Source of the DNA: Selaginella moellendorffii
Taxonomy: Eukaryota; Plantae; Lycopodiophyta
Direction of reading: 5' to 3'
NCBI RefSeq assembly: GCF_000143415.4
Contig: NW_003314315.1
Span: forward strand, 991,514 to 1,055,513
DNA: 64,000 nucleotides
The stretch's first letter is position 1; each line of letters starts with the position of its first letter. Positions 9,801 through 64,000 of the stretch are shown in pieces. Made by a program: the position numbers and the translations under genes. Below the pieces are notes generated by a model. The model worked only from the letters and a program-made list of their open reading frames with translations, searched no databases and was not told the origin of the DNA.

Positions 9801-10399
9801 AAAGTAAAAGAATTTACTTTACTATTAGTTCTCTCAATAAGATTAGAAAAAGAAAGAATATTATCTTGAGTATGATCTACATATTCCAATCTAGCCAAAA
9901 TACTATTAAATAAAATTAAATCAGTCGTAGGTTATATACTTATAAATTATAGTCGTTCATTCACTGGCTAATCATAAAATTATAGTCGTTAACATATCCA
10001 TTAACAACATCTATTAATTAAATTTTAACGTTACTAATTTAGTGTTAGTCATTAAACATTTAGAGCTAGGCATGACTAAGCACACGACGGAGGAAGCGAG
10101 GAGTGAGCATGGCAAAGGGGCAACCACATAAGAGAAGGGGGTTGCTATATTATGCATTTCTCCCCAGAAGCTTTCATCTAATAACACAAAAGACTCTAAC
10201 CAATTCTTCTCTTCCACAAAAGTGTGGAGCAAATTCCTCTAGAATAAGATGCTTTTTGATTATGATTGAGGGAACAATGCCAAAATCAATTTAGAGTGAG
10301 TAGTGTTACAACATAAATAGTCAAAGTGTTTACATGAGTTTATATGAGTTTCTAGCTATTTAGCTTCTCTAATATGTTCAACACTTGCAATTTTCTTAA

Positions 10400-10948
10400 G
10401 CAAATTACTTATCATCTTCAATTCATAATACTTATGCCCTTTCTTATTTTTGAATGCATGAATAACAATTCCATTCTTGAGTTGCAAGCAAAAGGACTCT
10501 GGCTTGTCGTCCACAATCACCATATGTTTGAAGTCCTACCCTAATCTTGAGAGATCCTCCACAACCTTTTTCCTTTGACTTCCTTGGTCGAGTACGAATC
10601 TCTATAGAGATGATGGGCAAAGAGATTCCTAGCTAAGTTAAGCTTGTCCAAAATCTTGTCTATATATAGCTTCATTGTTCAATTAAAAACCACGATCTTA
10701 TATATTTTACTCATCTCTTTTAGAAAGTCATTCATACCTAGCCTCTTTGCCACAAGATAGCACTGCAGTGAAATAATTTTCACACTAAAGAGCTTGAGGG
10801 ACACTATAGCCTTGTAGGCATGGATTAATGTTTCATCCATGTTCAACACAAACATGGGTTTCTTCTCCAAAGCTGGTAGCAGTAGTAAAGAATGGTTTGA
10901 CCACTTCACTTTTTTCTTCTTCTTTTTGGTGGTGATGTCAAGTGTCAC
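10400..10948 (-). pseudogene. Degraded SCP1/NIF (FCP1-like) CTD small phosphatase
   Basis: KKPMFVLNMDETLIHA (from LVLDLDETLVH), YLVAKRLGMNDFLKEMSKIYKIVVF; stops and frameshifts downstream. Confidence 0.65.
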
Positions 10949-11006
10949 AAAACTCCACTCCTTATACTCTCATGGTCCTAACTTAATCATAACAAACCTT
11001 TATATT

Positions 11007-12701
11007 TCAAGTTAATACACTTCCATAATTCTGGCTGAGCAACACATAGAAATTCGACTGTAATACCAACCCTAGTGTTGAGAGTCTCTGGGCAGCTCGA
11101 ACTCCACGCTCAGGATCCTTGTGGATCTTCTGGCAAGCAGCCAACAACGAGACCCAAGCAACACTCTCAGGCTCAAAGGGCATACTGTGAATGAGCTCTT
11201 CAGCCTTGTCTAGCTCTCCGGCCCTTGCAAATGCGTCAACAAGCTCACAGTAGTGTTCTCTCGTGGGCTCGACGCCATAGTCCCAAATCATTGACTGGAA
11301 GTAGTTTTGAGAGATCTTCACCACGCCCGAGTGGCAGCACGCCGCAAGCACACTTGTAAAGACAATGTGATCAGGCATCATGCTCTCCTGGATGATCCTA
11401 TGGAAGGCTTCCAAGGCCTCGGTTACATGCCCGGTGGAAGCATACATGGCCACCACTGCTGTCCATGAGACCAAGTCTTGCTCTGGCATTCTCTCGAACC
11501 AAACTTGAGCTTCCAAGAGGAGTCCCTTGCGAGCAAAGCCAACCACCATTGCCATCCAGGCAATTGCATCACGCTCCTCAATCGCCTGGAAGAGGCTTAT
11601 CCCTTCTTGGAGGTGGCCATTCCAGAGATAGGCCGAGAGGAGCGCTGTGCTCGCCATCTTGCTATTATAAGGTATTTGATCGAAAATAAACTTTGCATTT
11701 TCAAGATGGTTTCTAGAGGCGAGCATATGGATCATTGTTGTCCAAGAGATCTCGTCACAGTAAGCCATCTTTTGGAAACAATCTAGTGCTTCATCCAAAT
11801 GCCCATTCGCGGCATATGCGCAAAGCATGGAGTTCCAAGCCACCACGTCTTTGTTTGGCAGCCTCTCAAACAAGGCTTTGGCCTCTTCCACGCATCCATT
11901 AGATGCGTAGCCGTCCATCATAGCCGTAAATGCCACCTCATTAAGATCCGGAGCATCTTCAAAGAGAATCTTTGCTTGCTCCATATGCCCTGCCTGGGCA
12001 TATGCTGTGATCATGGTCGTCCATGTTACTACATTCCTTGTGGGCATTCTATCAAAGAGATCCTTAGCTTCATCCAGCCGTTGGTTCTCGCAGTGGCTTT
12101 GGATCATGGCCGTCCACGCCACCACGTCCTTTTGGGGCAGGGAATCGAACACCTCAAGCGCGAGTGAGAGATGCCCGTTATGGGCATATGCCACGATCAT
12201 GGCGGTGCTAGAAACGAGGGTTTGCTCCGGCATGGAGTGGAATACCGCCTCCGCCGCGCCGAGATTGCCAGTCTGCGAGTACATCTCGATCATCACGTTC
12301 CAGGTGATGGAATTCTTGGCAGGGATGCGATCGAAGAGCTGCTTGGCGCGCTGCACGTCTCCGGCCGCGGCGTATGCCGAGATCATGGCGTTGCTGGACA
12401 CAATCTCCTGCTGCGGCATGCTTTCCAGGACCGATCGCGCCTGCTCCAGGTCGTGGTTGCGAATGTAGGCCTGGAGGATGAGATTCCAAGAGAAGAGATT
12501 GCGATCCGAGGTGGAATCGAAGACCGATCGCGCTTCCTCCAGGCAGCCGCAGCGGCCATACATCTGGACGAGGAGATTTCGCAGGAAAACGCTGTTCCTG
12601 TGGTCGCTGTGAAGGATCTGGGCGTGGATCTGGCGGCCATCGCTGGGATTGTCGCAAGATCTGACGAGGGCGGCAAGCTCTTGGACGCCAAGAACGCGCA
12701 T
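11007..12701 (-). CDS. PLS-E class pentatricopeptide repeat protein (organellar RNA-editing factor type)
   Basis: Intronless. Many short PPR repeats (VVAWTAMI, VVTWTTMITAYAQAG) and a C-terminal E domain (HYCELVDAFARAGEL..MPFEPESVAWVSLLAAC..YVLLS). Confidence 0.92.
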   Translation of the reverse strand: MRVLGVQELAALVRSCDNPSDGRQIHAQILHSDHRNSVFLRNLLVQMYGRCGCLEEARSVFDSTSDRNLFSWNLILQAYIRNHDLEQARSVLESMPQQEIVSSNAMISAYAAAGDVQRAKQLFDRIPAKNSITWNVMIEMYSQTGNLGAAEAVFHSMPEQTLVSSTAMIVAYAHNGHLSLALEVFDSLPQKDVVAWTAMIQSHCENQRLDEAKDLFDRMPTRNVVTWTTMITAYAQAGHMEQAKILFEDAPDLNEVAFTAMMDGYASNGCVEEAKALFERLPNKDVVAWNSMLCAYAANGHLDEALDCFQKMAYCDEISWTTMIHMLASRNHLENAKFIFDQIPYNSKMASTALLSAYLWNGHLQEGISLFQAIEERDAIAWMAMVVGFARKGLLLEAQVWFERMPEQDLVSWTAVVAMYASTGHVTEALEAFHRIIQESMMPDHIVFTSVLAACCHSGVVKISQNYFQSMIWDYGVEPTREHYCELVDAFARAGELDKAEELIHSMPFEPESVAWVSLLAACQKIHKDPERGVRAAQRLSTLGLVLQSNFYVLLSQNYGSVLT

Positions 12702-45940: not shown

Positions 45941-47502
45941 ATGGATTCCCAACAAGCTCACATCTTGGCATTCCCTTTCCCAGCGCAGGGCCATATCAAT
46001 CCTATGATGTTGCTGTGCCGCAAGCTTGCCTCGATGGGAATCGTCATCACCTTCCTCAACATTCGCAGCCGCCACAACAATCTGGAAGAGGGCGATGATC
46101 AGTTCAGGTACGGTTGTGAGAGTTTCTTTCCTCCCCGCAAGATCTATTTGGAACCCCAGGTTCGTGAGCATCTCGGATGAGTGCCTACCAACGGGGAGGT
46201 TGGGAAACAACGTGATGAGGTATCTAATGGCTTTGGAAGAAGGAATGAGGGGTGAATTTGAGCAGATACTGGCGGATCTCACGGCCGACTCCAGTCGCCC
46301 TCCATTGACTTGCATCCTCTCCGATGCTTTCATGAGCTGGACTCACGATGTAGCCAGCAAGTTTGGAATCTGCCGTGCAGCGCTCTGGACGAGCTCTGCA
46401 ACTTGGGCTCTCTTGTCTCTACGCATCCCATTGCTCAGGGATAACGGAGTCCTGCCAGTGAATGGTAGGCCGAGAAATCTTTCGTTTTCTTTGGTTATAC
46501 ATCCGTATGTATTCCACAGGGATTCGAAGTAGCAAGATCCTAGACTTCTTACCCGGACTTCCACCAATCCCAGCACGGTATCTTCCGGAGACGCTGCAAC
46601 CCGATGAGAAAGACCCGGACTTCCGGTTGAGGATTCGAAGGAACAGTGTCATGCAGAAGGACGCGTGGGTGCTGCTCAACTCGGTCTACGAGATGGAGCC
46701 ATTGCAGCTGGAGGAGCTTGCCAGCAGCGACAATCTGCACTTCATCGCCGTCGGGCCCTTGCAATGCCTTATGCAACCCTCGAAGGAACATGCTTCTCAG
46801 TGGCAGCAGGATCGAAGCTGCCTGGAATGGCTGGACAAGCAAGCTCCGGGCTCGGTCGTCTACATCTCGTTTGGAAGCTTGGCCATCCTATCATATGATC
46901 AGGTGGAGCAGATACTGACCGGGCTGGACAAGAGCGGCCATGCATTCTTGTGGGTCATCCGGCTTGACCTTTTCGAAGGCGAGGAGATCCGAGCCAAGTT
47001 CCTGGAAAAGATCAGTCTCATAGATCGAGGTATTGTCATCCCATGGGCCCCTCAACTAGAGGTTCGTTTTATCATTTGATGATTCTCTAGGTGATCAACA
47101 TTGAAATTAAGAATCCCTCCCCAGGTACTACAGCATCGATCCGTGGGAGCGTTTCTCACTCACTCTGGATGGAATTCCGTCATGGAGGCACTTGCAGCTG
47201 GTGTTCCACTGCTGTGTAAGCCTTGCTTTGCCGATCAGATCCTAAACACCGCTCTTGTGGTGGATCACATCAAAGCTGGCCTTCGTGCCACCAAGCCAGA
47301 CGATGACAAAGAGGTGAGTTCAAGCCGCATTCACGAGGTGGTGAGTTTTGCCATGGGAGATGACGGGGCTGAGCTCAGAGAAAGAGTTAAACGGTTGGGT
47401 CAGACTCTGGCAAAAGCAGCCGAGCATGGAGGATCCTCGTTGTTAAACTTGCAAGCTTTCTGCCAGGACATGAAACATAGACAGGCTGCCAGAGTAGGAT
47501 GA
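45941..47502 (+). CDS. Family-1 UDP-glycosyltransferase (4 exons)
   Basis: AFPFPAQGHINPM, CLEWLDKQAPGSVVYISFGS, PSPG box [29 protein letters not shown]..ADQ. Confidence 0.93.
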
Positions 47503-47558
47503 TAAATCTTTAAAATTATCAATCTCATGTTGAGATCATTAACAAATCCTGGAAAAGT

Positions 47559-48148
47559 GGCAGAAGTCGCCATTGGTGGTGACATTGCAACGTGGGCAAA
47601 TTCTGATCACCCATATGATACTGCTGCAAAAGTTGCTGTTTTATTTGAATTGGCAAATAGTTGGTGGTCTTTAGATCTAGGTGGTATGTCCTGACATCGC
47701 ATTGGCCTCGTATATTGAAGACAATTTTTGCCAAGCTGTTGAAGATTTGTCAGCTGAAGATTCAAAAAGAGACAAGTTCTTTGTAGTTCCTGCTGTACCT
47801 ATGGCAACTGAAAAGTGATGTGGTGATAATGTTTGTGGGGTGTTGGTTCATTGCATTTTTTGCATATGAATTTTAAAGTATCAATAAGCCACCCAATAAA
47901 ACATTCATATCTAGGGTTCTTCTTTAATTGCAAGTTGAAAAGAATGATCTGATTAAGTTCTCCAGAATTTTCCATAATAGGCAGAAGTCGCCATTGGTGG
48001 TGACATCTCATCGTGGGCAAATTCTGATCACCCATATGATACTGCTGCAAAAGTTGCTGTTTTATTGAAATTGGCAAATAGTTGGTGGTCTTTAGATCTA
48101 GGTGGTATGTCCTGACATCGCATTGGCCTCGTATATTGAAGACAATTT
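47559..48148. repeat. Near-identical direct repeat of about 170 bp (47559-47727 and 47980-48148)
   Basis: ggcagaagtcgccattggtggtgacat...gtatattgaagacaattt occurs twice between the UGT and CYP. Confidence 0.9.
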
Positions 48149-48394
48149 ATAGTTATCCTAAAATATCTAAGTCTATTCTAAATATATTCAGGATATTATT
48201 ATTATTAAATGGTTATGTAAAACCTTTTGATCTTTACGTGTGTGCTTGTGGTGCCAAAAACCCTCCCCCACACTTGAAAAGCAGGTTAATCGGCATTGTC
48301 TACCGTACTTACCCACACCTAGTTGAGCAGTCTTCTTCATTTTCTTCCACGAACTCGCCATAAAAGGGATCATGCTGCTGTGCAAAACAGAAAA

Positions 48395-49904
48395 ATGGAA
48401 GCCCTGTCTATCATCCTAGTGGGAGCAGCTACACTAGTTCTATGCTCGCTCTTTGCATCGCGCTTCTTGTATCCGCTTCCACCGGGTCCATGGGGTACTC
48501 CACTCTTTGGGCATTTGTACTCGCTCGGGGAATTGCCACACCAGACTCTCTCAAAGCTCTCCAAGAAGTATGGCCCGATCATGACTGTCAGGCTGGGAAT
48601 GGTTCCAGCACTGGTGATTGACTCGCCGCAGTGGGCACGAGAATTTCTCACAACACATGATATTGCATTTGCCTCTAGGCCTCAGAATACAAACTCGAAG
48701 TATTTGTTCTTTAATGGCAGCGACGTTGGGTTTTCTCCGTATGGTGAGCACTGGAGGAATCTGAAGAAACTCATCACTATGGAGCTCTTCACCGCCAAGA
48801 AGATGGAGGTTTTCAAAGCTCTACGTGCCAATGGGATCCTCCGCGTGCTGAAATCTATCGCTGCGGAGGAAGGCAACGTAGTCAGCATAAGGAATTTGCT
48901 CTCTATGCTCAACATGAACAACATAAGTCAGATGGCTTTCAGCAAGCAAGTCATTGATGATCCAATATTTCAGAGGTTCCTGGCGGTATTGGAAGAGTCA
49001 CTGGATCTCATGGCAGTCTTTGTTCTTGGAGATTTCATTCCATTCCTTAAGTGGTTTGATCCTTACGGTTATGTCGCAAAAATGAAGGCCAACCGTAAGG
49101 AAATCAGCGGGATATACCAGATGATTATTGATGAGCACAAGTTGAAGAGAAAGAAAAATTGCACTCCCACTGATCTCGTGGATATACTCCTCTCACAGGG
49201 GGTGGACGAGACCACAATCAAAGGAACGATCATGGTAATCACCATTTGTGTGCATTGTATGTTTCATAAACCCACTCTTTCGAATCTTGTTACAGGGCAT
49301 GTTCGTCGCAGGAACTGACACATCTTCACTCACGTCCGAGTGGGCTCTTACCTCGCTCATAAACAATCCAAGCTGCATGAAGAGAGCCCAGGAGGAGCTC
49401 GATAGAGTTGTGGGGCGAGAGCGCCGTGTCCAAGAAGAGGATCTATCCAGTCTTGTCTACCTGAAAGCCATTGTCAAGGAGACCTTCCGGCTGCATCCGC
49501 CCGCGCCGCTTCTGCTGCCACGCGAGTCAACCCAGGAGTGTACAGTCAAAGGCGGGTACAAAATCCCCAAAGGTACACGACTCATTATCAATACCTGGTC
49601 AATCGGCCGAGACCCCAGCCTGTGGGAGTCTCCTGAAGAGTTCAAGCCCGAGAGATTCCTTGAAAAGTCCATCGATATCAAGGGACAAGACTTTGAGCTC
49701 ATTCCTTTTGGTGCCGGGCGGAGGATTTGTGCTGGTTTGCCGCTGGGACAGACCATGGTGGAGCTCACCCTGGCTAGCCTGCTACAAGCGTTTGAATGGA
49801 AGACAGACAAAACGCTGGATATGGAGGAGTCCGAAGGGCTGACAACCAGGATGAAAGTTCCACTCGCGGCACATATGACATGCAGGACTTCTCTCAAGTT
49901 CTAA
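48395..49904 (+). CDS. Cytochrome P450, CYP71 clan (A-type), single intron
   Basis: TM anchor plus LPPGPWG, AGTDTS, KETFRLHPP, FKPERF, FGAGRRICAG. Intron at about 49235-49295, the conserved A-type position. Confidence 0.93.
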
Positions 49905-50298
49905 ATCTCTGCATATCAGATTTGGTCCTCCTATTATAAAACGGTTGTTGTGAGATTATAATATTGTCAAAGGCATATCTATCATAATTCATCCTTTGAT
50001 TAAAAACAAAGATTTTATTATTAGGGTTATTCAACTCTGCGTTTTCTTGCAACCATACGTACCACAAAACAGCCAGTCCAAAGTTGCGTTAAGTCCGCTG
50101 GTGGTCTCCAAGAAACGTGGAAGCTTTGACAACTTCTTGGAGGAGACTCTAGAGTCGCCACCGAAAGTATAGGATTCAAGCTGCCCCGCCTCCTGAGGTG
50201 GAGAACTTTTGCTCGGTTTCTCGAAGTGTTGGAAATGACTAACCTCTTTGCTTCCATACTGCTTGCTAGATCAACACAAAACTCTTATCTCCTGCCTG

Positions 50299-52895
50299 TC
50301 AGTAAGAAGAGGACGAAGGGGGACGATTTCCCGGTGGATACGGAGAGCCTCTCTCCTGCGGTGGAGCTGACGTCCCGTCCTGGTTGTACTGCTGATGCTG
50401 CTGTGATGGATACTGCTGCTGCTGCTGCGGTGCGTACTGCTGCTGTGGAGGGTATTGCTGCTGCGGTGGTGGCGAGTTTTGATACTGGTTGTACTGCGGC
50501 GGTGGCGCGTTTTGGTTATACTGTTGCTGCTGGTATGGTGGTGCGTTCTGGTATGGCGGCGGGCTGGAAGGACCGTTCTGGTACTGTGGAGCTCTCGATG
50601 CTGGAGGAGCCTGAGAGTAACCAGCGCCATATCCTCCGGATTGAGAGTAAGGTGACCCCGCTCCCTGGGAGTAGCCACCGCCGCCAGCCGGTGGAGCTTG
50701 TGTCCCTGCTGCTGAATATCCGCCTGGAGCAGCCGAGTATCCTCCCTGCCTTGGAGGCTGCTGCGAGTAAGGTGCCTGACCACCACCTCCTGCGGCCGAG
50801 TATCCTCCCTGTGCTGGAGCTTGTTGCGAGTAAGGTGATTGACCACTTGCGGCTCCAGCAGCCGAGTATCCACCGGGAGCTGGAGCCTGCGAGTAAGGCG
50901 ACTGAGCAGCTCCGTATCCGCCTTGCTGCGAGTAAGGTGGCTGGCCGCCTTGTGCGTAAGGTGACTGGCCAGTCCCTGCTGCTGCGTATCCACCTTGAGA
51001 TGGAGCTTGCGAATAAGGTGACTGACCATATCCACCACCCGAAGCTGGAGGCTGCGAATAAGGAGACTGAGTGGCTCCATATCCACCTGGAGCTTGCGCC
51101 TGTGGTTGCGTCCCGTATCCAGTTTGCGGCTGCGAGTAACCACCCGGAGCTTGGGACGCTTGAGCTGGAGCTGGAGTTGGAGCTGGAGCCGATGCTGCTG
51201 CTGGGGTTGGTGCTGGTTGGGAAGAAAGTAGTCCCCCGGAAGCGTCTGAAGTTGCTGCTGGAGCCGGAGCTGCCGGTTGCGCGTCTTCTGCTGGTGGAGC
51301 CCCTGCCGATTGCGCTCCCGGCATTGGATATAGTTCCGCAGGTGTAGTTGGAACGCCAGGAGCCGGTTGAGTCGCGGCTGCTGCAGCCGCTGCTGCCGGA
51401 GGGAGGTGATCAGTCGTTCGAGGAGCCATTGCCGGCACTTTGATAGTTTTCTTCTCCTTGATGACTTCCAGTACCTTGTTAGCTTCGTCGATGAAGGCCT
51501 CGTAACCTTCAATGTTTCGGATCACAATGTCGATCTGACAGAATGCATGTATCAGAATCAGCGTAAGAAAGAACAGAGAGAAAAATAAAGGAAAAGAGAA
51601 GAAAGAAAAGGAAGTGCTTACTCGCTCAAAGCCTTCGCAGCTGTCTTTAAGAGTTCGAAGCGCAACTTCTGCGCCATCCGCATAGGGGTACCTGAGCGTG
51701 ATTGTTAGTAACTACCCCAAATAAAAGAAATGCCATACCCGTATATATTGCAAGACAAGGGCGGAAATGCAAGATATTTTAACTTCTCTTTGCGAGCAAC
51801 CAAGAGAGCAGTCCTGCAGAAGTAGACTTTCCGTGAGAACAAAAAAACCGGAAACAGAAATGCTGCACCTGTAAGCTTTTTCTAGAGTTGGATCAGACTC
51901 TCGAACACCTGTTTTCTCGTTTTTCTTGTGAACAGCTCCGACTGTATGAATGACACGATGTACAGGAAGATCAAAGGCTCTAATACAAGAAAAACGAAAA
52001 AACAAAACGAAAAACTCAATACACAAACTAGAAACAACGACAAAGGTACCTCGTACTGATAGCATCACCCATTTCAGCCTTGATTCCCTGAGGAGCAACA
52101 TCCGGGAGCCTTTGAGTGCATTCCAAGAGCTTCGAACCAGCAGCTTTGAAAAGAACTACAGAGAAACACACACACGCATTGGAACTATTAAAATGCATTT
52201 GGAGTAAAAGGTGCGAATTACCTGCATTCACAGCTGGTCCAGTGTTGAGCTTCTTGTTTGCTGGAGCAATCTGCGAGGCAGGAAAAAAAAAACGAAAAGA
52301 AGAACACGAACCTTACAAACGAAAGAAGAGAAGCATAAGAGAGACATACCACTGCATCCTGCTTGCCATCCACAAACCACTTGGACAAGTCCCCAAAGTA
52401 AATGGTGCACAGACAAGTTGGCGAGAGCTTGAAGTGTTCTCGCTGCAAGAGCTCCGTCGGTGGCTTTGGCGGTGTCAGCCATTCCATCACCTTGGACTTC
52501 TGCTTGGTGGGATCATAAGGCCGCGGAGTTCCGGGCTTTGGACGAGGCGAGCCTGGCAATCCAGGAATCTGGCTCCCTGGAAAGTTGAGTCCCAAAGACC
52601 CAGAAAATCCCGAGAAGGGAGGCGGCCGCGAGAACTTCCTATCGGAGGTAGCCGTGGACGCCGTTGGCCTGGTTGGGAGCTCTTTGGGAAGACTATCGGC
52701 AGTGCCATTTGTTCCAGACGGCGGTGGCGAGCCTGGAGCTCCAGTGCACGCCCTCACACTGAGAGAGAGCGACGAATTCCTGGTTGCGGCGGGCAAATAC
52801 GCGAAGTTCCCGGGCCTCACATCGCCAAAGAGGCCAGAGGAATGGATACCTAGCGGAGGCGAGACCCTCGCCTGGCTCACAGCCGCGAGCTGCAT
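50299..52895 (-). CDS. Macrodomain (Appr-1''-p/MacroD-like) protein with predicted transit peptide and long Q/G/Y/P/A low-complexity tail
   Basis: GDLSKWFVDGKQDAV, APANKKL, AFDLPVHRVIHTVG, LAFPPLSCNIYGYP across about 6 introns. The final exon carries repeated GGY..QSPYSQ units. Confidence 0.8.
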
Positions 52896-53407
52896 CGTCC
52901 AGGAATCCCTGCGCGGCCGGGAAGCTCTCAGCGCCGGATTGCGAGAAAATGCGTCACGAATCTCACGGCCATACCTCGGAGAGCGCGGAGGAGCACAGCA
53001 CCTTATCCCTTCGCGAGAAATATACGTAGGGCTTATAGCAGGGTTTATGAAAGATCTATCTAGGGGCAATCCCGACCGTCGGTTATCAAGCATCTGAAGC
53101 CGTCGGATCTAGATATTTCTTTTTTAAAACGAGGCTTTCCGCGCGAAATGTTCTTGGATGGTTTGATCTAATCACATCGATTTTTTCCCAGGAGATCACA
53201 TCCCAGCCACTAGAACTAGTGGCCATTGCTCGAAATCGATAGAAAGAACCAGGGCATGGAATTCGTCTATTTGGACCACGCGAGAGGATGATTCGCGGAA
53301 TCAATCTCTTTTAAATATAGCTCCCACACCACGATGCGATAAGATTCTTCTGGAGTTCCAGGTAGTGTTCTACTCGAGCCCTTGGTAGAAGAGATATTCT
53401 AGCTCCC

Positions 53408-55243
53408 ATGGCCACCATGAATGGATCGCCCAAGGTCGATCCAGACGCCCTCGTCGATGCCTGGCTCGCGCGATTGGATTCCTCTCTCGCCTCCGGCGAT
53501 GCATCGGCCGCTGCCAATCTCTTCGAGGAATCCACTTCGTTCTGGCGGGATCTCATCGCGTTCACCTGGAACATCGTCACGGTCGAGGGCCGGTCACAGA
53601 TCCACGCCATGCTCCAATCCACGCTCGAATCAGTCGCGCCCAAGGGTTGGGTCCGCAACGGTACCGCCAGCTACAGCGCGGACTCGGGCGTCATTGAGGC
53701 CTGGATCAAGTTCGAGACGCGCGACGCGGTATGTACGGGGCATTTGCGCCTAGTGGCCACTACTTCCCTCTGCCGTACGCTACTCACCGCCATGGAGGGG
53801 CTCAAGGATTTCCCAGAGAAGAAGGGCCATACGCGGCCCAAAGGTGTGACGCACGGCGTCATACGGCACCGCGCGTCATGGCTGGACGGGCGCAAGGAAG
53901 AGGAGCGGACGCTGGGCAGTACCGTGCAGCCCTATTGCGTCATTGTCGGGGGCGGGCAGGCGGGTATCGGGCTTGCCGCGCGGCTCCGGCAGCTCGGCGT
54001 GCCGTGCATCGTGGTAGAGAAGAACCCGCGGCCGGGCGATTCGTGGAGGAGTCGCTACAAATCGCTGTGTCTCCACGATCCGGTGTGGTATGATCATCTT
54101 CCCTATTTGCCATTCCCGGAGAACTGGCCGATCTTCACGCCCAAGGACAAGATGGGAGATTGGCTCGAGGCTTACACCAAGATCATGGAGATCAACTACT
54201 GGACCTCCAGCGAGTGCCTGGGAGCTCGATTCGATCCACAGTCCGGGGAGTGGGAGGTGAAGATCCTGCGGGATGGGAGCAAGGAGGTGACCTTGCGACC
54301 CAAGCAGCTCATCCTGGCGACCGGGATGTCAGGATTTCCCAATGTGCCACGAATTCCCGGGCAGGAGGAATTCGTGGGCGATCTCCATCACTCGAGCAAG
54401 CATCCGGGAGGCGAAGCTTACAAGGGGAAGAGAGCGGTGATCCTGGGATCCAACAATTCGGCCCACGACATCGCCGCCGATCTCTGGGAGAATGGCGCCG
54501 CGGAGGTGACGATGATCCAGCGATCCTCCACCCACGTAGTTCGATCCGAGTCGCTCCTCCAATTCGTGATGAAAAACACCTACTCGGAATCGGCGGTAGA
54601 GTCGGGGCTCACGACTGACAAGGCCGACATGATCTTCGCGAGCGTGCCATACAAGATCATGGGCGATGTCAATCGACCAACCTACGATGCGATCCGAGCC
54701 CACGACAAGGATTTCTACGCCGCGCTCACCAAGACTGGATTCATGCTCGACTTTGGCGACGATGACTCGGGGCTCTTCATGAAGTACCTCCGCCGTGGAT
54801 CCGGCTACTACATCGACGTGGGCGCATCCCAGCTGTTGATCGACGGCGAGATCAAGCTCCGCAGTGGCGTCACCATCGCGTCGCTCAAGCCGAGCTCGGT
54901 GGTGCTGAGCGACGGTACGGAGATCGCGGCCGATGTGGTGATTCTGGCCACGGGGTACGGATCCATGAACCAATGGGCCGCGAAGCTAATCTCCCAGGAG
55001 GTGGCGGATCGCGTGGGCAAGTGTTGGGGGCTGGGATCGAACACGCGCAAGGATCCCGGGCCGTGGGAGGGGGAGCTCCGGAATATGTGGAAGCCCACCG
55101 CGCAGGAAGGGCTGTGGTTCCATGGTGGGAATCTCCACCAGGCTCGTCACTACTCGCTCTATCTGGCGCTACAGCTCAAGGCGAGGATGGAGGGAATCAC
55201 GACCCCGGTGTATGGCATGCCCAAGGTCCACCACCTCAGTTAA
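53408..55243 (+). CDS. Intronless bacterial-type (type II) flavin-containing monooxygenase with N-terminal SnoaL/NTF2-like extension
   Basis: FWRDLIAFTWNI; GGGQAG; WRSRYKSLCLHDPVWYDHLPY; LATG; FVGDLHHSSKH; GSNNSAHD; LATGYG. Confidence 0.92.
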   Translation: MATMNGSPKVDPDALVDAWLARLDSSLASGDASAAANLFEESTSFWRDLIAFTWNIVTVEGRSQIHAMLQSTLESVAPKGWVRNGTASYSADSGVIEAWIKFETRDAVCTGHLRLVATTSLCRTLLTAMEGLKDFPEKKGHTRPKGVTHGVIRHRASWLDGRKEEERTLGSTVQPYCVIVGGGQAGIGLAARLRQLGVPCIVVEKNPRPGDSWRSRYKSLCLHDPVWYDHLPYLPFPENWPIFTPKDKMGDWLEAYTKIMEINYWTSSECLGARFDPQSGEWEVKILRDGSKEVTLRPKQLILATGMSGFPNVPRIPGQEEFVGDLHHSSKHPGGEAYKGKRAVILGSNNSAHDIAADLWENGAAEVTMIQRSSTHVVRSESLLQFVMKNTYSESAVESGLTTDKADMIFASVPYKIMGDVNRPTYDAIRAHDKDFYAALTKTGFMLDFGDDDSGLFMKYLRRGSGYYIDVGASQLLIDGEIKLRSGVTIASLKPSSVVLSDGTEIAADVVILATGYGSMNQWAAKLISQEVADRVGKCWGLGSNTRKDPGPWEGELRNMWKPTAQEGLWFHGGNLHQARHYSLYLALQLKARMEGITTPVYGMPKVHHLS

Positions 55244-56240
55244 GTCAAATCAACTAGTCAAATTTGTCAATGATAGTCAAACATTTAAAATTTGAAAAAA
55301 GTAATCCGGTATGATCAGCTTCTTAGGTTTTGCTAGCGCCCGTGGTTGCAGGGCGCAGCGCACATCTGAAGCATCACTTCCTGGGGAACGATGCTCGTCC
55401 CACAGCAATCAACGTTACGCAGCGGATTTTTGTCAGCTGCAAGAGACGAGGAGCACTCACTGGAGGGATTGCGGCCAGGCCGGAATCATGCAGATGAAGC
55501 TGAATTAGTGGCATCGCTTCTTATCCACTACTTCTGGCGCTAAGACGAATTATTTTCCATTAAACAAAGTTTAGGTGGATCTTTTTGTTGGCAGTTGTAC
55601 CATCAGGAAAAAAAGGAAAGTTGAATCTAGTTCTTTGTTTCCTTGATTGGGATGAGCTAGAGAAAGAAGACAAAGAGTACACATGATATACTCATAACTC
55701 CCCTTATATATAAAGAAATATATAACATATAACACAGCTCTTCAACTGATTTGGAGGGCAGTAACAGAGCAAGCATATTAGTGAGCACCTCATCAAAGGT
55801 TTTGGTTGTGACATGCCCAAAAGCAACAAGCTTGAACAGGCACAAGTCAATTTAAAAGCACTATTAGAGAGTTACTTCAAAACTAGTTTTTAAACCTCAT
55901 TATCCCTACTATACTTTTGGTACCCCCCCTCCACAGATCCACCGTGAGATAGGATGTGCAGTTCCCCAAAGAGGAGAAATATTTTAGCTCACCAGATCCA
56001 GCGCGGGGGTAGAAGGCGCTGAATTTGCCTTCCAATTCTAGTTTCTTACCAGACAAGGAAATGGCCAGGCCTCGCACGAATTTCTGAACCGCTGGAACGA
56101 TCGCCAGCGCTCCCAGGACGTGCGAGAATTTTTAAAGAGACCCCTCGCGAATCAAGACCCACCATAAATCCAAAGTAAGCTGAGCATAGGCTGGATATCC
56201 AGATCTAGGGCTGGGCGATTTAGGAGGAGAAAGGGTCGCT

Positions 56241-59200
56241 ATGGCGAGTGATGAGGATTTTGTGGTTCTTCTCAGGGCCAAAGGGCCAGATCTACCAAAG
56301 GGAGTTCTTGATCGAGATGGTGAGGGTGTGGAATACTCGTTCGTGGGGCCTCGGCGCTATGCAGATGGAAAATCTCTCTTGGAGTACTTAGGCGATGGGC
56401 AGTATTACGTTGCCAGGGAACATCAGGGGAGGTATGGATGGCAGGAGCTAATAGCGGAGCTACAGCGTGTGCCAAGAGTTGCGGATTGTATCCATGTCTT
56501 CGAAAAAGGTATAACGTCTTTGTGTTTCTTTTGATCTTAGAGGGGATCTTGGCTTATTTTGTTGTTGGAAATCTGATGTTCTTCTAACGCACAGGTAAGA
56601 TTGGAGCGTGGCTATCGCTGTGGTGCCTTGATCTTTTGTCTGACTGCATCGTTTGTCGTTCCTTCTAAACACTATCTTTTGTGATTTTGCAGTGGCGAGA
56701 AGAGAGCCCATTACCAAAGGTACTGAACGTCTGTTCAGTAGCGTCCTTTATCAATACCGTTTGTTTGTTTTGCAGGGCTTCTTCAGAAGTTTGGAGATAA
56801 ACTCTCCTCTGTCGTTGCTGTCGTCCAACGCACAGGTAGGATTATTTTTGTCTGATTGCGGTTTGTCTAAACTGTTTTTTAAAATTTTTTTATTTTGCAG
56901 TGAGAAGCAAGCCCATTACTAAAGGTATTGAACGCGTGTTTGTCCTTTATCAATAGCATTTGTTGTGCAGATGTTGTGGAAGCTATACTACAGACGTTTG
57001 GCGATGACCTCTCAGACAGCATTTCCAGCATGACCCCTGCGCACGCGTTCAAAAGAAAGTTCTCGCTCACCAAGGTTCCAATTTGCCAGATAAACGTTTC
57101 GGGACGTTGGCAACCGAGTCTTTTGTGGCATGGTCTGGAGCAGCCTCTTGGTTCTAGAGATATTCTTTCATTGTTGAGAATCAGCAACCCCAGTCTTTTG
57201 ATTCTATTCGACGTCTCCGGAGCCGGAAAGACGCGTTGCTTATACGAGATTGCGGCACAGCAGACCTGTCTTTACTTCACTGGCGTGTGTTCCGGTTCTC
57301 CTACTGCTGATGGCTCCCGGGACCTGTTGGTCGTGTCCGAGACACTGCAGAGGCTGTATCCAACAGGTCCGATTCCAGTTTCATCCCTCAAGACCTGTTT
57401 GAGGGCGGTGCTCCTGTCAAGGCTTTTCATTCACCGCAAATGTGACGACCTCCTCAAGCCACTGAGCAATTTGACATTTCTTTTCAAGCAGGTTATGCAC
57501 CAGCAGCTCAACTATACTCAGGCTGACCCTTGGGCCCATTTAACCGGGTGCATCTTGGCGCTGGCGACGTCAGTTGATGATCTTCCTGCATTGGAGTCCG
57601 TGTTGAGCAAGATGCTCCGTGCGTACACCTGGGACTGGCCGATTATTTTGGACGAGTGCCAGGAGGTGAACAGATATCTGAAAGACAGGTTCATGGCAGG
57701 AGATGGGGAGACGGGCAGCCTTAGACGATCAATGCTTGATAAGTTTGTTATTGCTCTCCAGGATGCTGGGTTCAACAACAAAGTAATCTTTGCTGGCACT
57801 GGGAGATCGCTGTATCATGTGGCCACTCACATCTCCGAGGTATATTGTATGCGTTCCTGCGTTTTATGGCTAATGTTTGTGTCCATAGACTATGAAATTC
57901 CGTGTGAGCATCTATTGGTATACAACCTTTGGCGAGTTTCGGGATGGTCAGGCCCTGCGGCAATATGCTAGCAACATATTGGAGGATTGCAGCATCATTG
58001 ACTTTGAGAGGCTCGGGGTGCTGTACAGAGGAAGATATCGGACGTTTGTTACTGCTCTTGAGCAGTATATCCTTTTTAACCCGCCTGCAACCGCAGCTAC
58101 AGAGTTTTTCTTGAATTATGCCAAAGAGACAACATCCATGAGGTATGTGAAATTTCGCCAAAAGCGGCAGAGCTTCTCGACTGATGATTGGAATGTTACA
58201 GGGGTGTATCTTGGACGGGACCAAGCAAGAGGATAAGTCCTGCAGATATTATGAACACAGTGAACAGGACAGTGCTTGATGATGTCTACCGATTTTTTTC
58301 AGGAGTCCCGAGTGATGAACTGGCGGCAGTGAAGGCTCTAGTTCAATCAGTTGTTGCGAACCACTTCTTCGGTACAGGAAAGATGGTCGTGATGAATCCA
58401 ACGTTATCACTGGTGGAGTTTGGACTTGGGAGAGTCCAGTATAAAGGACACAGGCTGATGAAGTGGATGTATCAACATCAAGACGGAATTATTGGCCATT
58501 CTGACACAAGTGAAAAATGCCGAGCTGTAGAGATCTTCGAGCCGCTGGTCTGTCGTGCCCTGTGGCACTATTATCAGGAAAATTCCTCCTTGCAACGGAT
58601 CCAGCAGCATCGTTTTCTGGAGAAGGCCGAAATATATGCCAGTGCTACAGGGGAGGTTTATGAAACTGCAGTTGCTGAGATGATTGGGGAGCACTTAGAT
58701 GGAAGGTGTCTGGCCGACCTTTTCTCATCGTGGAACACGGAGCCGATTCCGTCCATCTACAACAACACTGCAACTCTTGCTAGGCCGAAGATTGATAACC
58801 AGAACCTCATCGGGACAGAGACGGAGGACTTTCGATTAATCGATTGGATAAACAGCGTTACTAGTGGTAAAGACAACTTCTTTACTTTCTTTTCGACAGG
58901 CATGAATAAGACTTGCGGGCCAGATATATGGTGGTTTCTGACAGTTACGGAAGTGGCAAAACCGGCTGTAGGTGAGCACGCAGACAAGCTTCAATGCACC
59001 GGTGTGCCAGTGACAACTTTCATCATATGTGCAGCGCAATTGAAGACTCTCCAGAAAATGGCAATGGGTGACTATGTGTCTTCGTTGGATTTCAACAAGC
59101 TCTTTTTGCACAAGGGTGGTCAAGGATATAAATTAGTTGTGAAGAGAAAAGAGGATGAGGAAGGTGCGAAGCGAGTGAGGGAACTTGCAAGGTTTGGGTG

Positions 59201-59399
59201 TCTCAAGCTTGTGGTGATGACAGATTTTGTAGATTTGATGAAGTTCCAGCCAAAGGTTCAACACGCAGCAAAGTTGGAAAAATTGAACACACATTGTGAA
59301 CAGGAACAAATTTCGGCATTACTTGGGGTTATTGATGGTACAAACATTTGCATGTTTGACGAGGAATGGTTGATTGACAGTGTTAAGCAATGTAATTGA
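56241..59399 (+). CDS. Crinkler (CR)-like protein: N-terminal header, P-loop NTPase, C-terminal PD-(D/E)xK-like nuclease; multi-exon
   Basis: Walker A DVSGAGKT, Walker B PIILDECQ, VIFAGTG, GRYRTF, IFEPLV, GEVYE..GPD..AQLK. GT-AG introns join the ORF blocks. Confidence 0.7.
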
Positions 59400-60249
59400 A
59401 TAAAAATCTTTCTTTCTTTTAAGGTATATCTAACTATTACTTATTTTGCATAATATTGGACATTAAAAATGTGGACATAAAAACTAAAGCTGGTGTTCTT
59501 GGAAATTAGAGCAAAGAAAACCACTTGGAATTCAACACAAGAATTGAAAGTTGAGCTTGGACATCAATCCCAAAGAGGAGCTTGCAAAGAACAAAGTTGC
59601 ATTTTCAATGGTGATCTTGCATCTGAAGCATTCTAGATTAGGAATGTGTCTACAATGTTTTCTTCATCACCTAACTTAGTATGAAGAGGTTGGTGTTTTC
59701 AAGGCACAAAAGGTGGTGATACTCAAGGGAGATTTGAGGATGACCATATGGTTTCATTGCCAATGAAATACTCCTTTATCCCCTCCTTGAAGGAAAAGAA
59801 AATTTGAAACACTAGCTCTATTTGGACTAGTTATGTTGTTTTTACCTTATTACCTATATTCACCCTCACTCCATTATCATATTTGTTAAGGTTAAATATT
59901 CTGTTTGGACTAACTATGGTTGTCTTCACTCCAGAATTTATATAATTCATCCTCACTTAACTACTATATTTTCTTGTCCAAGAGTCTAACCCCAAAGATA
60001 AAGTGTATCCATCCTTTCTAACCCTTCCTTCAAAATATAAAAAGTTTGAAGCATTAAGGCAAAGAGGAGAAAGTGAGAAAATTGAGAAAGAAACATTGAG
60101 AAAGAAAAAAAGTGGATAAAGACGCATTAAAAAAGGAATTTTTAAAAGAAAAAATGAGAAATAAAAAGAAGGAAATATGAAAGCCTGAAGAATAGGGAAC
60201 CTATTATAAATACTTCACACCACAAGCTAAGTAGGAGATTCATACTGTT

Positions 60250-62500: not shown

Positions 62501-64000
62501 TGTTCTACCGCTCATTTGACGAAAAGATCATTGGCACAAAAACGATATCACACACCTTATATTCCCGAAATTGGCGATGTTCATTAGCAAACTTCTCCAC
62601 TCTATCCCTTTATCCTATGGCGATTTACCATAGGATACCACCACGAAGCGGAACCTAAACCCTCTTTGTGCCACGTGACAGATGCCACGTGTCACATACC
62701 ACGTGTCCATAGGAACCCGAGGTTCAGGGCCTTGGGCCACTGAACGAAGGAACGGTGCCAAACTCCCAAGCGTGACGCCAAGGAGTGATGGAACCGGACC
62801 ATGGAGCAACTCCCGAGCATATAGCCCAAGGAGCGAAGGGACAGGAGCCCGGAGCGACTTGGAATAGTCCTGGAGCAACCAACATCCCAATGCCAAGACC
62901 AGCACGCAAAACGGAGCCAAACAAAGTCTGGCGCTATTTCGGCATACCGGTGGCCTAACACGAGGATATGGGTACTCCACCAGCTAGCATGGAATGGAAC
63001 TTGGGCTTAGACCCAAGCCGGACGCAAAACAAGGACAGGCACGCAAGCGGGAGCTAGACTATGCCTCAGGTTGGTCGGCCATGCCCGACCTACCCACTAT
63101 CCCTACTATACATTTGGAACCTCCCATAGCCCCCCCCCCTTGAGGAACACATGCTTTGGGCTTTCACCCCAAGCCTCCCTTAGTATCAGGAGTTAGTCTC
63201 AGGGACAAACTCGAAACTTACTAAATATGGAATGTCCTTAGATTGCGAATTTGGACACGGGACGAACACCATTGTGTTCAGGTCGATCTCTACATTCCGT
63301 AGATATGCCAAATGAGCAAATCTGGACACTTTCCATAAATAGCATTTGGGACCGAATGAGACTAACACAAAGGGCATGATAGCGAGGGTGTTTGGCAGAC
63401 ACGGTAAGCTATCATCCAGCGATATTGAGGGACTAATCTCAATACGCGTGAGTTCTTGCCAAGCCAGTGCAAGACAGAGCAAAAGAGAACTAAGAGCCAG
63501 GCTGAGAATGCTCAGCTAGAAACACATAGGAGTTCCTACCTTATGTTCATCTGGCTAAGTACAGATGCAAAGCCCAGTAAGCTAACACTTGGACAAGAGG
63601 GGCTAATAAAGGGAACCAGCAATACCGACCTCCTGCCATCATGGCAGTAAGGTAAGAGTGTCCGTAAGGACTAGCCGACAGGTAACTTTCAATACCCGAA
63701 GTCACATTCGCGACACTCTCCCCCCCTTGGGAAAATCGACGTCCTCATCGATGCATACTCGAGTCTAGAATACCGCCAAGGAAACAACTCCAAAAAAAGT
63801 TCACGGTACTCACACTATGTGAGAAATGCACCAACTTAAATGAGTTAGGGAGCAACCTCTTTGTCTAACGCGGATGTGCTACCAGCTCAGACACCTTCCG
63901 GCCGTCGCCGACAAGGAAATGACCAACGGAGTCAGCCACCCTTGCTGCTCTGAGAGTCACCCAGCTTACAAAAGTGTGATATGCCCTGCCCGCGGGAACA
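62501..64000 (-). mobile_element. 3' LTR (about 62501-63715) plus PPT of a younger LTR retrotransposon continuing beyond the window
   Basis: On the - strand, CAAGGGGGGGAGAG precedes TGTCGCG at 63715. The core at 63085-63170 is homologous to 4430-4510 of the solo LTR. Left boundary is inferred. Confidence 0.65.

Follow-up and report, generated by a model that had tools for sequence, protein, structure and literature searches.

A stretch of 64,000 nucleotides from the lycophyte Selaginella moellendorffii (contig NW_003314315.1; hereafter the window) carries, at 53408..55243 on the forward strand, one unbroken open reading frame (ORF) that runs from ATG to TAA and encodes a flavin-containing monooxygenase (FMO) of 611 amino acids plus stop in a single exon. 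By sequence, this gene matches the annotated LOC9661707, and its protein is 100% identical across 608 amino acids to NCBI protein P0485. It is highly probable that LOC9661707 is a functional, transcribed, single-exon nuclear gene for a soluble class B monooxygenase of type IIb, also called 'Seedless FMO' or sYUC, from a family of likely bacterial derivation. Its predicted product is not an auxin-making YUCCA.

Transcription was examined in public sequencing runs. Twenty runs from ten studies contain the stretch, and four of them were aligned over 52000-57000. Three of these four are RNA-like, come from separate studies and show spliced joints in both neighbouring genes. In all three, the FMO gene was covered end to end, from ~53178 to 55587-55740, with zero joints (contigs X1, 53178-54274 and 54276-55587; X5, 53477-55740; X7, 53398-55155), while the spacer at 53002-53168 had a depth of zero in two of the three. 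The contigs place approximate untranslated regions (UTRs) of ~230 nt at the 5' end and ~350-500 nt at the 3' end. Because the RNA-like contigs cross the gene without a joint while its neighbours show joints, the gene is intronless, and it is also transcribed.

This agrees with a first-pass annotation made from the letters of the window, which had described an intronless 611-amino-acid ORF with strongly G/C-ending codons. The GC content at third codon positions (GC3) is 0.784, with an overall GC of 0.611, compared with a GC3 of 0.49-0.60 in five neighbouring ORFs; along the window, GC rises from ~0.45-0.50 on either side of the gene to ~0.6 across it. Every motif string quoted in that annotation was located in the protein, namely FWRDLIAFTWNI at residues 45-56, LHDPVWYDHLPY at 222-233, YLRRGSGYYIDVGAS at 460-474, KDPGPWEGELRNMWKPT at 548-564 and LWFHGGNLHQARHYS at 569-583.

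The RefSeq model of LOC9661707 (XP_002982568.2, 651 amino acids) splices from ~55225 to 55397 and thereby swaps the conserved C-terminal VHHLS, common to the bacterial enzyme JsFMO described below, for a 45-amino-acid tail. RNA-like contigs from two runs pass unspliced across 55225-55397. Because this interval is unspliced in the contigs and the model loses the conserved VHHLS, the 611-amino-acid ORF, and not the 651-amino-acid model, looks like the homology-supported product.

Domain architecture and enzyme class

The class assignment is carried by a continuous alignment to a characterised bacterial enzyme. Residues 13-611 of the Selaginella FMO align with residues 25-618 of PDB entry 8acs (E 1e-255), which is JsFMO from Janthinobacterium svalbardensis. 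JsFMO is a dimeric type II FMO that performs Baeyer-Villiger oxidation and sulfoxidation with NADPH or NADH; its SnoaL-like N-domain lies outside the active site, and His216, Asp217 and Tyr458 serve in catalysis (PMC10028610). In both proteins a linker joins a SnoaL-like N-domain to a monooxygenase domain, and both have the catalytic His/Asp/Tyr, the Arg for the 2'-phosphate and the C-terminal VHHLS. Unlike JsFMO, the Selaginella gene has a plant host and a eukaryotic transcript with UTRs. Pfam calls Pyr_redox_3 (2.3e-21) and FMO-like (1.2e-17) at residues 178-418, and SnoaL_2, which is recorded for many close relatives, was not called on the window protein at E<=0.01.

The full-length alignment and the motifs (Table 1) thus bear out the earlier description of a type II FMO of ~600 amino acids with an N-terminal extension, distinct from YUCCA and FMO1. 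Turnaev et al. (2020) defined 'type IIb FMOs' by these motifs together with an N-domain of ~160 amino acids (PMC7570161). The Selaginella protein has the N-domain, the FxGxxxHxxxHP signature, Asn at the second and Ala at the third Gly site of the NAD(P)H motif, GDSWRxRY and the His-Asp...Tyr residues. After GSNNSA follows QRSSTH (371-376), in which Arg372 aligns with the 2'-phosphate-binding Arg363 of JsFMO. The protein does not fit the fingerprint of type I Baeyer-Villiger enzymes, FxGxxxHxxxW(P/D), as His332 stands at the Trp position, and the structures of PAMO and CHMO are weak matches (E 1e-9 to 1e-7) that align over the Rossmann parts only.

Table 1 Features of the FMO gene, its transcript and its neighbours (window coordinates)
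Feature	Position	Strand	Remark
SnoaL/NTF2-like N-domain and linker, residues 1-175	53408..53932	+	8acs alignment; holds FWRDLIAFTWNI and the insertion at 42
FAD/NAD(P)H two-dinucleotide-binding monooxygenase domain, residues 176-611	53933..55240	+	Pfam; 8acs alignment through VHHLS
FAD-binding Rossmann motif GGGQAG, residues 181-186	53948..53965	+	
GDSWRSRY, residues 210-217	54035..54058	+	GDSWRNRY with one conservative substitution; predicted FAD diphosphate contact
His223-Asp224	54074..54079	+	Aligned to catalytic His216/Asp217 of JsFMO
FMO-identifying motif FVGDLHHSSKHP, residues 322-333	54371..54406	+	Fits the type IIb signature FxGxxxHxxxHP
NAD(P)H-binding motif GSNNSA, residues 347-352	54446..54463	+	Second Gly replaced by Asn, which most type IIb FMOs have
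Tyr467, in the GSGYYID block	54806..54808	+	Aligned to catalytic Tyr458 of JsFMO
Unspliced transcript, approximate extent	53178..55740	+	RNA-like contigs; exact ends not fixable by contigs
Upstream neighbour, annotated 730-aa spliced plant gene	50299..52895	-	Gene call on GL377619.1; no Pfam domain
Downstream neighbour, annotated 914-aa plant gene	56241..59509	+	Gene call; several GT..AG introns

YUCCAs share with the Selaginella protein the fold of class B FMOs and the Rossmann motifs for FAD and NAD(P)H. Unlike it, they are without the N-terminal domain and carry FxGxxxHxxxY/F-K/R, whereas here a 175-amino-acid N-terminal region exists and the motif ends in HP; identity between YUCs and sYUCs is reported as at most 23% (PMC12659883). 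Three S. moellendorffii paralogs (P0001, P0484, P0487) are named 'probable indole-3-pyruvate monooxygenase YUCCA5' by NCBI/UniRef. Because of their motifs and N-terminal domain, these paralogs are not YUCCAs by sequence, and we regard the label as a misnomer.

By homology with JsFMO, the C-terminal domain would bind FAD through GGGQAG and NAD(P)H through GSNNSA and Arg372. Reduced flavin would then react with O2 to a C4a-(hydro)peroxyflavin, which is predicted to oxygenate either a ketone, in a Baeyer-Villiger reaction, or a substrate with sulfur or another heteroatom; this would take place in a tunnel that His223, Asp224 and Tyr467 presumably line. The SnoaL-like N-domain may have a structural or dimer-forming role and not a catalytic one. 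With no N-terminal extension past the JsFMO alignment, and hence no evident targeting peptide, the enzyme is probably cytosolic.

Earlier publications already cover the gene, its family and its bacterial affinities; the S. moellendorffii loci are not named in the main text of PMC7570161, PMC10015382 or PMC13557801. In the description by Turnaev et al., the type IIb family holds four S. moellendorffii sequences, Klebsormidium GAQ82387.1 and the Rhodococcus jostii enzymes FMO-E/F/G, and further homologues come from transcriptomes of liverworts, hornworts, lycophytes and ferns and from both green and red algae (PMC7570161). Taken together, published reports place the family in charophyte and chlorophyte algae, liverworts, hornworts, lycophytes and ferns (PMC7570161, PMC10015382, PMC13557801). 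The plant clade appears as sYUC in Carrillo-Carrasco et al. (2023; PMC10015382), and a 2026 study in Plant Journal renamed it 'Seedless FMO', describing the SnoaL-like domain, GDSWRNRY and JsFMO as structural match and reporting two family members in Marchantia (PMC13557801). The type II class was founded on the characterised enzymes FMO-E, -F and -G of R. jostii RHA1 (Riebel et al., cited by PMC7570161 and PMC10028610), with an N-terminal extension of ~160 amino acids, Baeyer-Villiger and sulfoxidation activity, and use of NADH or NADPH (PMC7570161, PMC10028610). Their relation to the Selaginella FMO follows these papers, and their traits are those that the first-pass annotation had ascribed to bacterial type II FMOs.

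The Seedless FMOs of Marchantia polymorpha, Riccia, Adiantum, Pteridium and Ceratopteris have the same architecture as the Selaginella FMO, the motifs FxGxxxHxxxHP, GxNxxA and GDSWRxRY, and the insertions at positions 42 and 364. Those of Marchantia and Adiantum are likewise single-exon. The Selaginella protein differs from the other plant members in being only 52-62% identical to them, which is below its proteobacterial identity, in being without their deletion of 3-4 residues at 393-400, and in falling outside the liverwort and fern clade in all unconstrained trees.

Genomic setting and paralogs

The gene is part of a plant scaffold. Positions 43408-64000 of the window are 100% identical to the 1.39-Mb S. 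moellendorffii scaffold GL377619.1. The claim that spliced plant genes flank the FMO is confirmed by RNA-like contigs on both sides: the upstream 730-amino-acid gene shows CT..AC joints at 52155/52222, 52270/52350 and 52907/52974, and the downstream 914-amino-acid gene shows GT..AG joints at 56506/56593, 56717/56774, 56832/56898 and 56922/56969. A cytochrome P450 gene is split across two ORFs at 48.3-49.9 kb (annotated ~48395-49961). With its spliced upstream neighbour, the FMO gene is shown to be embedded in ordinary plant chromatin. RNA-like contigs across the 730-amino-acid gene occur in three RNA-like runs, and a six-frame reading of its exons gives low-complexity sequence rich in Pro, Ser and Gly.

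Physical linkage to plant DNA, a check that the first-pass annotation had called for, is provided on the upstream side by a contig from a DNA run that covers 52618-53434 and so joins the plant flank to the FMO ORF. In the DNA-type run X14 (90-99% alike), one form omits 385 bp just past the stop codon (55239-55625), and the sequence of an X14 contig diverges upstream of 53398. These variant forms are allelic or paralogous copies with other flanks.

Bacterial contamination or an assembly chimera would account for a bacterial-looking, intronless gene with high GC3, and we nevertheless consider it extremely improbable. The gene lies within the 1.39-Mb scaffold among spliced plant genes, the two paralogs described below are both also present on a second, allelic scaffold, and the DNA-run contig joins the upstream flank to the ORF. 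In addition, transcripts appear in RNA-like runs of at least three studies, in which the neighbours are spliced, and the closest bacterial protein is at most 66% identical. Contamination was therefore rejected on the scaffold setting, the allelic scaffold, the DNA contig over the flank and the RNA evidence.

The best hit of the protein search, at 94% identity, is S. moellendorffii SELMODRAFT_422043, whose locus is the paralogous one and resembles the window over the gene itself only. The 90% cluster comprises six S. moellendorffii entries on two scaffolds, and all six are of one type. A paralog lies ~56 kb downstream, and each of the two paralogs has an allelic copy on the second scaffold. The pair differs at 72 of 1836 nucleotides (dS 0.078, dN 0.028), and with a dN/dS of 0.36 the paralogs are under purifying selection. 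After its arrival, the gene would thus have been duplicated to give the copy ~56 kb away.

The 34 amino-acid differences between the paralogs (53408-55243 versus positions 10001-11836 of the paralog locus, L001) are clustered, with seven at 384-391 and five at 421-426, and so point to relaxed or diversifying selection on a loop or to a short tract of gene conversion. Positions 62650-63850 of the window match sequence that lies upstream of the paralog (L001 1-520 and 7787-8478) in reverse orientation at 80-90% identity, probably as a repeated element or as what is left of the duplication behind the paralogs.

Further upstream in the window, copia gag and reverse transcriptase fragments occur at 42.5-45.4 kb, and a UDP-glycosyltransferase (UGT) is annotated at ~45941-47502. 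The UGT, P450 and FMO genes lie inside 10 kb (45941-55243), with only the 730-amino-acid gene intervening, and this neighbourhood is a possible candidate for a specialised-metabolism gene cluster. The paralog locus is without UGT or P450 neighbours.

One bacterial acquisition or two

The closest matches outside Selaginella are proteobacterial proteins at 63-66% identity, and none fall between 66% and 94%. In an exhaustive search of 50%-identity representatives, all relatives at least 50% identical collapsed into one representative, which is bacterial, and the next full-length representatives were 35-47% identical, including Ceratopteris (47%) and fungi (40-44%). The nearest clusters in the protein atlas are bacterial as well. 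Word searches recovered family members in Marchantia, Riccia, Adiantum and Pteridium. A gene acquired by one lineage should be absent from related plants, whereas homologues of this one are present in these four genera and in Ceratopteris.

Identities span a narrow range. The Selaginella FMO is 57-58% identical to liverwort and 52-62% identical to fern proteins; liverwort proteins reach 64-68% with the slower ferns and as much as 66% with bacteria. Raw identity was dropped as a decisive measure, as Ceratopteris (47%, versus 65% for bacteria) is a fast-evolving outlier and slower ferns reach 61-62%. One eukaryotic entry, P0002 (a Mantamonas plastica transcript in EukProt), shares 88% identity with a Marinobacter protein, groups with it in trees and most likely reflects bacterial material carried over into the transcriptome.

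Because introns are absent from every checked plant member and proteobacteria supply the nearest relatives, a bacterial ancestry of the plant family is likely. The part of the first-pass annotation that took the intronless and GC-rich state of the Selaginella gene as marks of a special transfer did not survive this comparison. The Marchantia member (L003 3001-4827) is intronless and has a GC3 of 0.78 in flanks of GC 0.37, and the Adiantum member is also intronless. Intron absence was rejected as a sign of recent transfer, since the Marchantia and Adiantum genes are single-exon too, and high GC3 was rejected as a sign of recency, since the Marchantia member has an equal GC3 in AT-rich flanks. 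The Marchantia loop 'E----GGPP', opposite residues 393-400 of the window protein, is nearer to the fungal and actinobacterial outgroup than to the close bacteria.

The question remained whether the Selaginella genes go back to the same ancient acquisition as those of liverworts and ferns, to which we assign about an even chance, or to a second acquisition from a Halomonadaceae-like gamma-proteobacterium, which we hold as a tentative but serious alternative. A careful maximum-likelihood (ML) search with 64 ingroup rows (LG+C20+F+G4, posterior mean site frequency model, PMSF) placed Selaginella in a clade of seven rows with Salinicola, Modicisalibacter, P0034, P0075 and P0121, of Halomonadaceae type, with support of 99/96; this clade lay inside a 17-row gamma-proteobacterial clade with support of 98/93. 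Liverworts and ferns formed a separate clade (100/99) that was weakly anchored. A FastTree analysis of 347 sequences likewise gave a liverwort and fern clade with support of 1.0 and Selaginella outside it, and in a PMSF tree of 98 rows with outgroups Selaginella fell in a gamma-proteobacterial clade with moderate support. The transcripts P0297 and P0312 from Logan branch as sister to ferns.

These placements are what one would expect if Selaginella had gained its gene from a Halomonadaceae-like gamma-proteobacterium separately from the liverwort and fern event, with the new gene replacing a plant-type copy. The same Selaginella neighbourhood was obtained with the N-domain alone, with the monooxygenase domain alone and after Dayhoff-6 recoding, and amino-acid composition differs little between the groups. 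A compositional artefact behind the Halomonadaceae grouping is therefore unsupported by the composition check and the recoding, and a mosaic gene with N- and C-domains of separate origin is unsupported because both halves place alike. Also in keeping with a separate transfer are the higher identity to proteobacteria than to liverworts and ferns, the presence in Selaginella of only 4 of 13 residues specific to liverworts and ferns (true members hold 9-11 of 12-14), and the fact that six of six S. moellendorffii entries are of this type. Clade-specific signature residues, spread over 7-13 columns, are too few to discriminate.

A separate transfer, however, has to accommodate several observations that point the other way, and we see it as a minority explanation of some weight. 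In approximately unbiased (AU) tests, trees with all plants in a single clade are not significantly worse (p 0.104 at ΔlnL 45.7; p 0.301 at ΔlnL 14.4). Compared with most bacterial members, the Selaginella FMO has one additional residue each at positions 42 and 364 and two at 91-92. The residue before FWRD (position 42) is present in Selaginella and in 15 of 15 liverwort and fern rows, and in 1 of 71 bacteria; the 'GAA' insertion (position 364) is present in Selaginella and in all other plant sequences covering the site, and in 3 of 71 bacteria; the two residues at 91-92 are common to Selaginella and ferns only. A separate transfer would need all three insertions to be convergent. It would also demand loss of the plant copy and then regain of the same rare family. 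Donor-like sequences reach at most 66% identity. Moreover, the Selaginella stem is long and unbroken (0.6-0.75 substitutions per site), which makes its placement prone to artefact and is the limiting factor on the question of origin.

The alternative, which we rate as evenly balanced between true and false, is a single ancient origin, bacterial or older, followed by vertical descent in all streptophyte members, with the gamma-proteobacterial position as an artefact of long branches or weak signal. On this reading, the Selaginella genes would be either an orthologue that has diverged or the one remaining copy of an old pair of paralogs; the two reported Marchantia members leave room for such old paralogy (PMC13557801). 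The insertions at 42 and 364 are common to Selaginella and all liverwort and fern sequences, and that at 91-92 is common to Selaginella and ferns only, in line with the tracheophyte species tree. The AU tests leave room for plant monophyly and also do not reject a grouping of Selaginella with ferns (p 0.093). In the constrained trees, the united plant clade adjoins the beta-proteobacterial type P0391, which carries the 'GAA' insertion and 4 of 13 plant-specific residues, as well as the same gamma clade. The intronless state, seen in Marchantia and Adiantum, and the high GC3, seen in Marchantia, are common to other plant members, and the literature treats the lycophyte members as part of a single plant family whose base is algal (PMC7570161, PMC13557801, PMC10015382).

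A single origin has to contend with the fact that no unconstrained ML tree recovers a plant clade and that the constrained trees lose 14-46 log-likelihood units. The clade of liverworts and ferns excludes Selaginella at 99-100% support, contrary to the species tree barring hidden paralogy. At 393-400, Selaginella retains the bacteria-like 'YSESAVESG', whereas liverworts and ferns have deleted 3-4 residues, with varying lengths.

The proposal of bacterial horizontal transfer made in the first-pass annotation thus divides into two parts. Bacterial ancestry is likely, the best matches being proteobacterial and the ML trees nesting Selaginella in gamma-proteobacteria at 99/96, whereas a transfer specific to Selaginella is a tentative possibility: the shared insertions speak against it, and the AU tests do not reject the rival plant grouping. 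That annotation had set its proposal against a vertical clade of orthologues across green algae and land plants; homologues are published from both and were found here in liverworts and ferns, which counts in part against the proposal, but the unconstrained ML trees do not join them with Selaginella in one clade.

Several points weigh against our reading of LOC9661707 as a functional type IIb monooxygenase of bacterial derivation. In the rooted 98-row tree, the liverwort and fern clade stands near the base of the close group, beside and not clearly inside the close bacteria, and we infer both the direction and the antiquity of the whole-family transfer. The substitution-based trees set Selaginella apart from other plants, in conflict with the AU tests and the insertions. 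Finally, plant members are uncharacterised (PMC13557801), and the substrate and reaction type that we propose derive from the bacterial homologue.

In its most far-reaching form, a second independent capture would mean that the ancestral Seedless FMO was lost and replaced, that the shared insertions are convergent, and that the new gene was perhaps recruited into a UGT/P450 metabolism cluster. We consider this version possible but rather doubtful.

Significance for the plant enzyme family

The comparison with other seedless plants changes what the appearance of the Selaginella gene implies. To be intronless, GC-rich and bacterial-looking is the usual state of the whole plant enzyme family and not the mark of a fresh transfer. 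The 'YUCCA5' label that databases attach to Selaginella genes is shown to be wrong. As the closest characterised relative is an enzyme with Baeyer-Villiger and sulfoxidising activity, a concrete assay is at hand for this uncharacterised plant family. The choice between one and two bacterial acquisitions makes the family a tractable case for studying the frequency with which plants take up the same bacterial enzyme anew.

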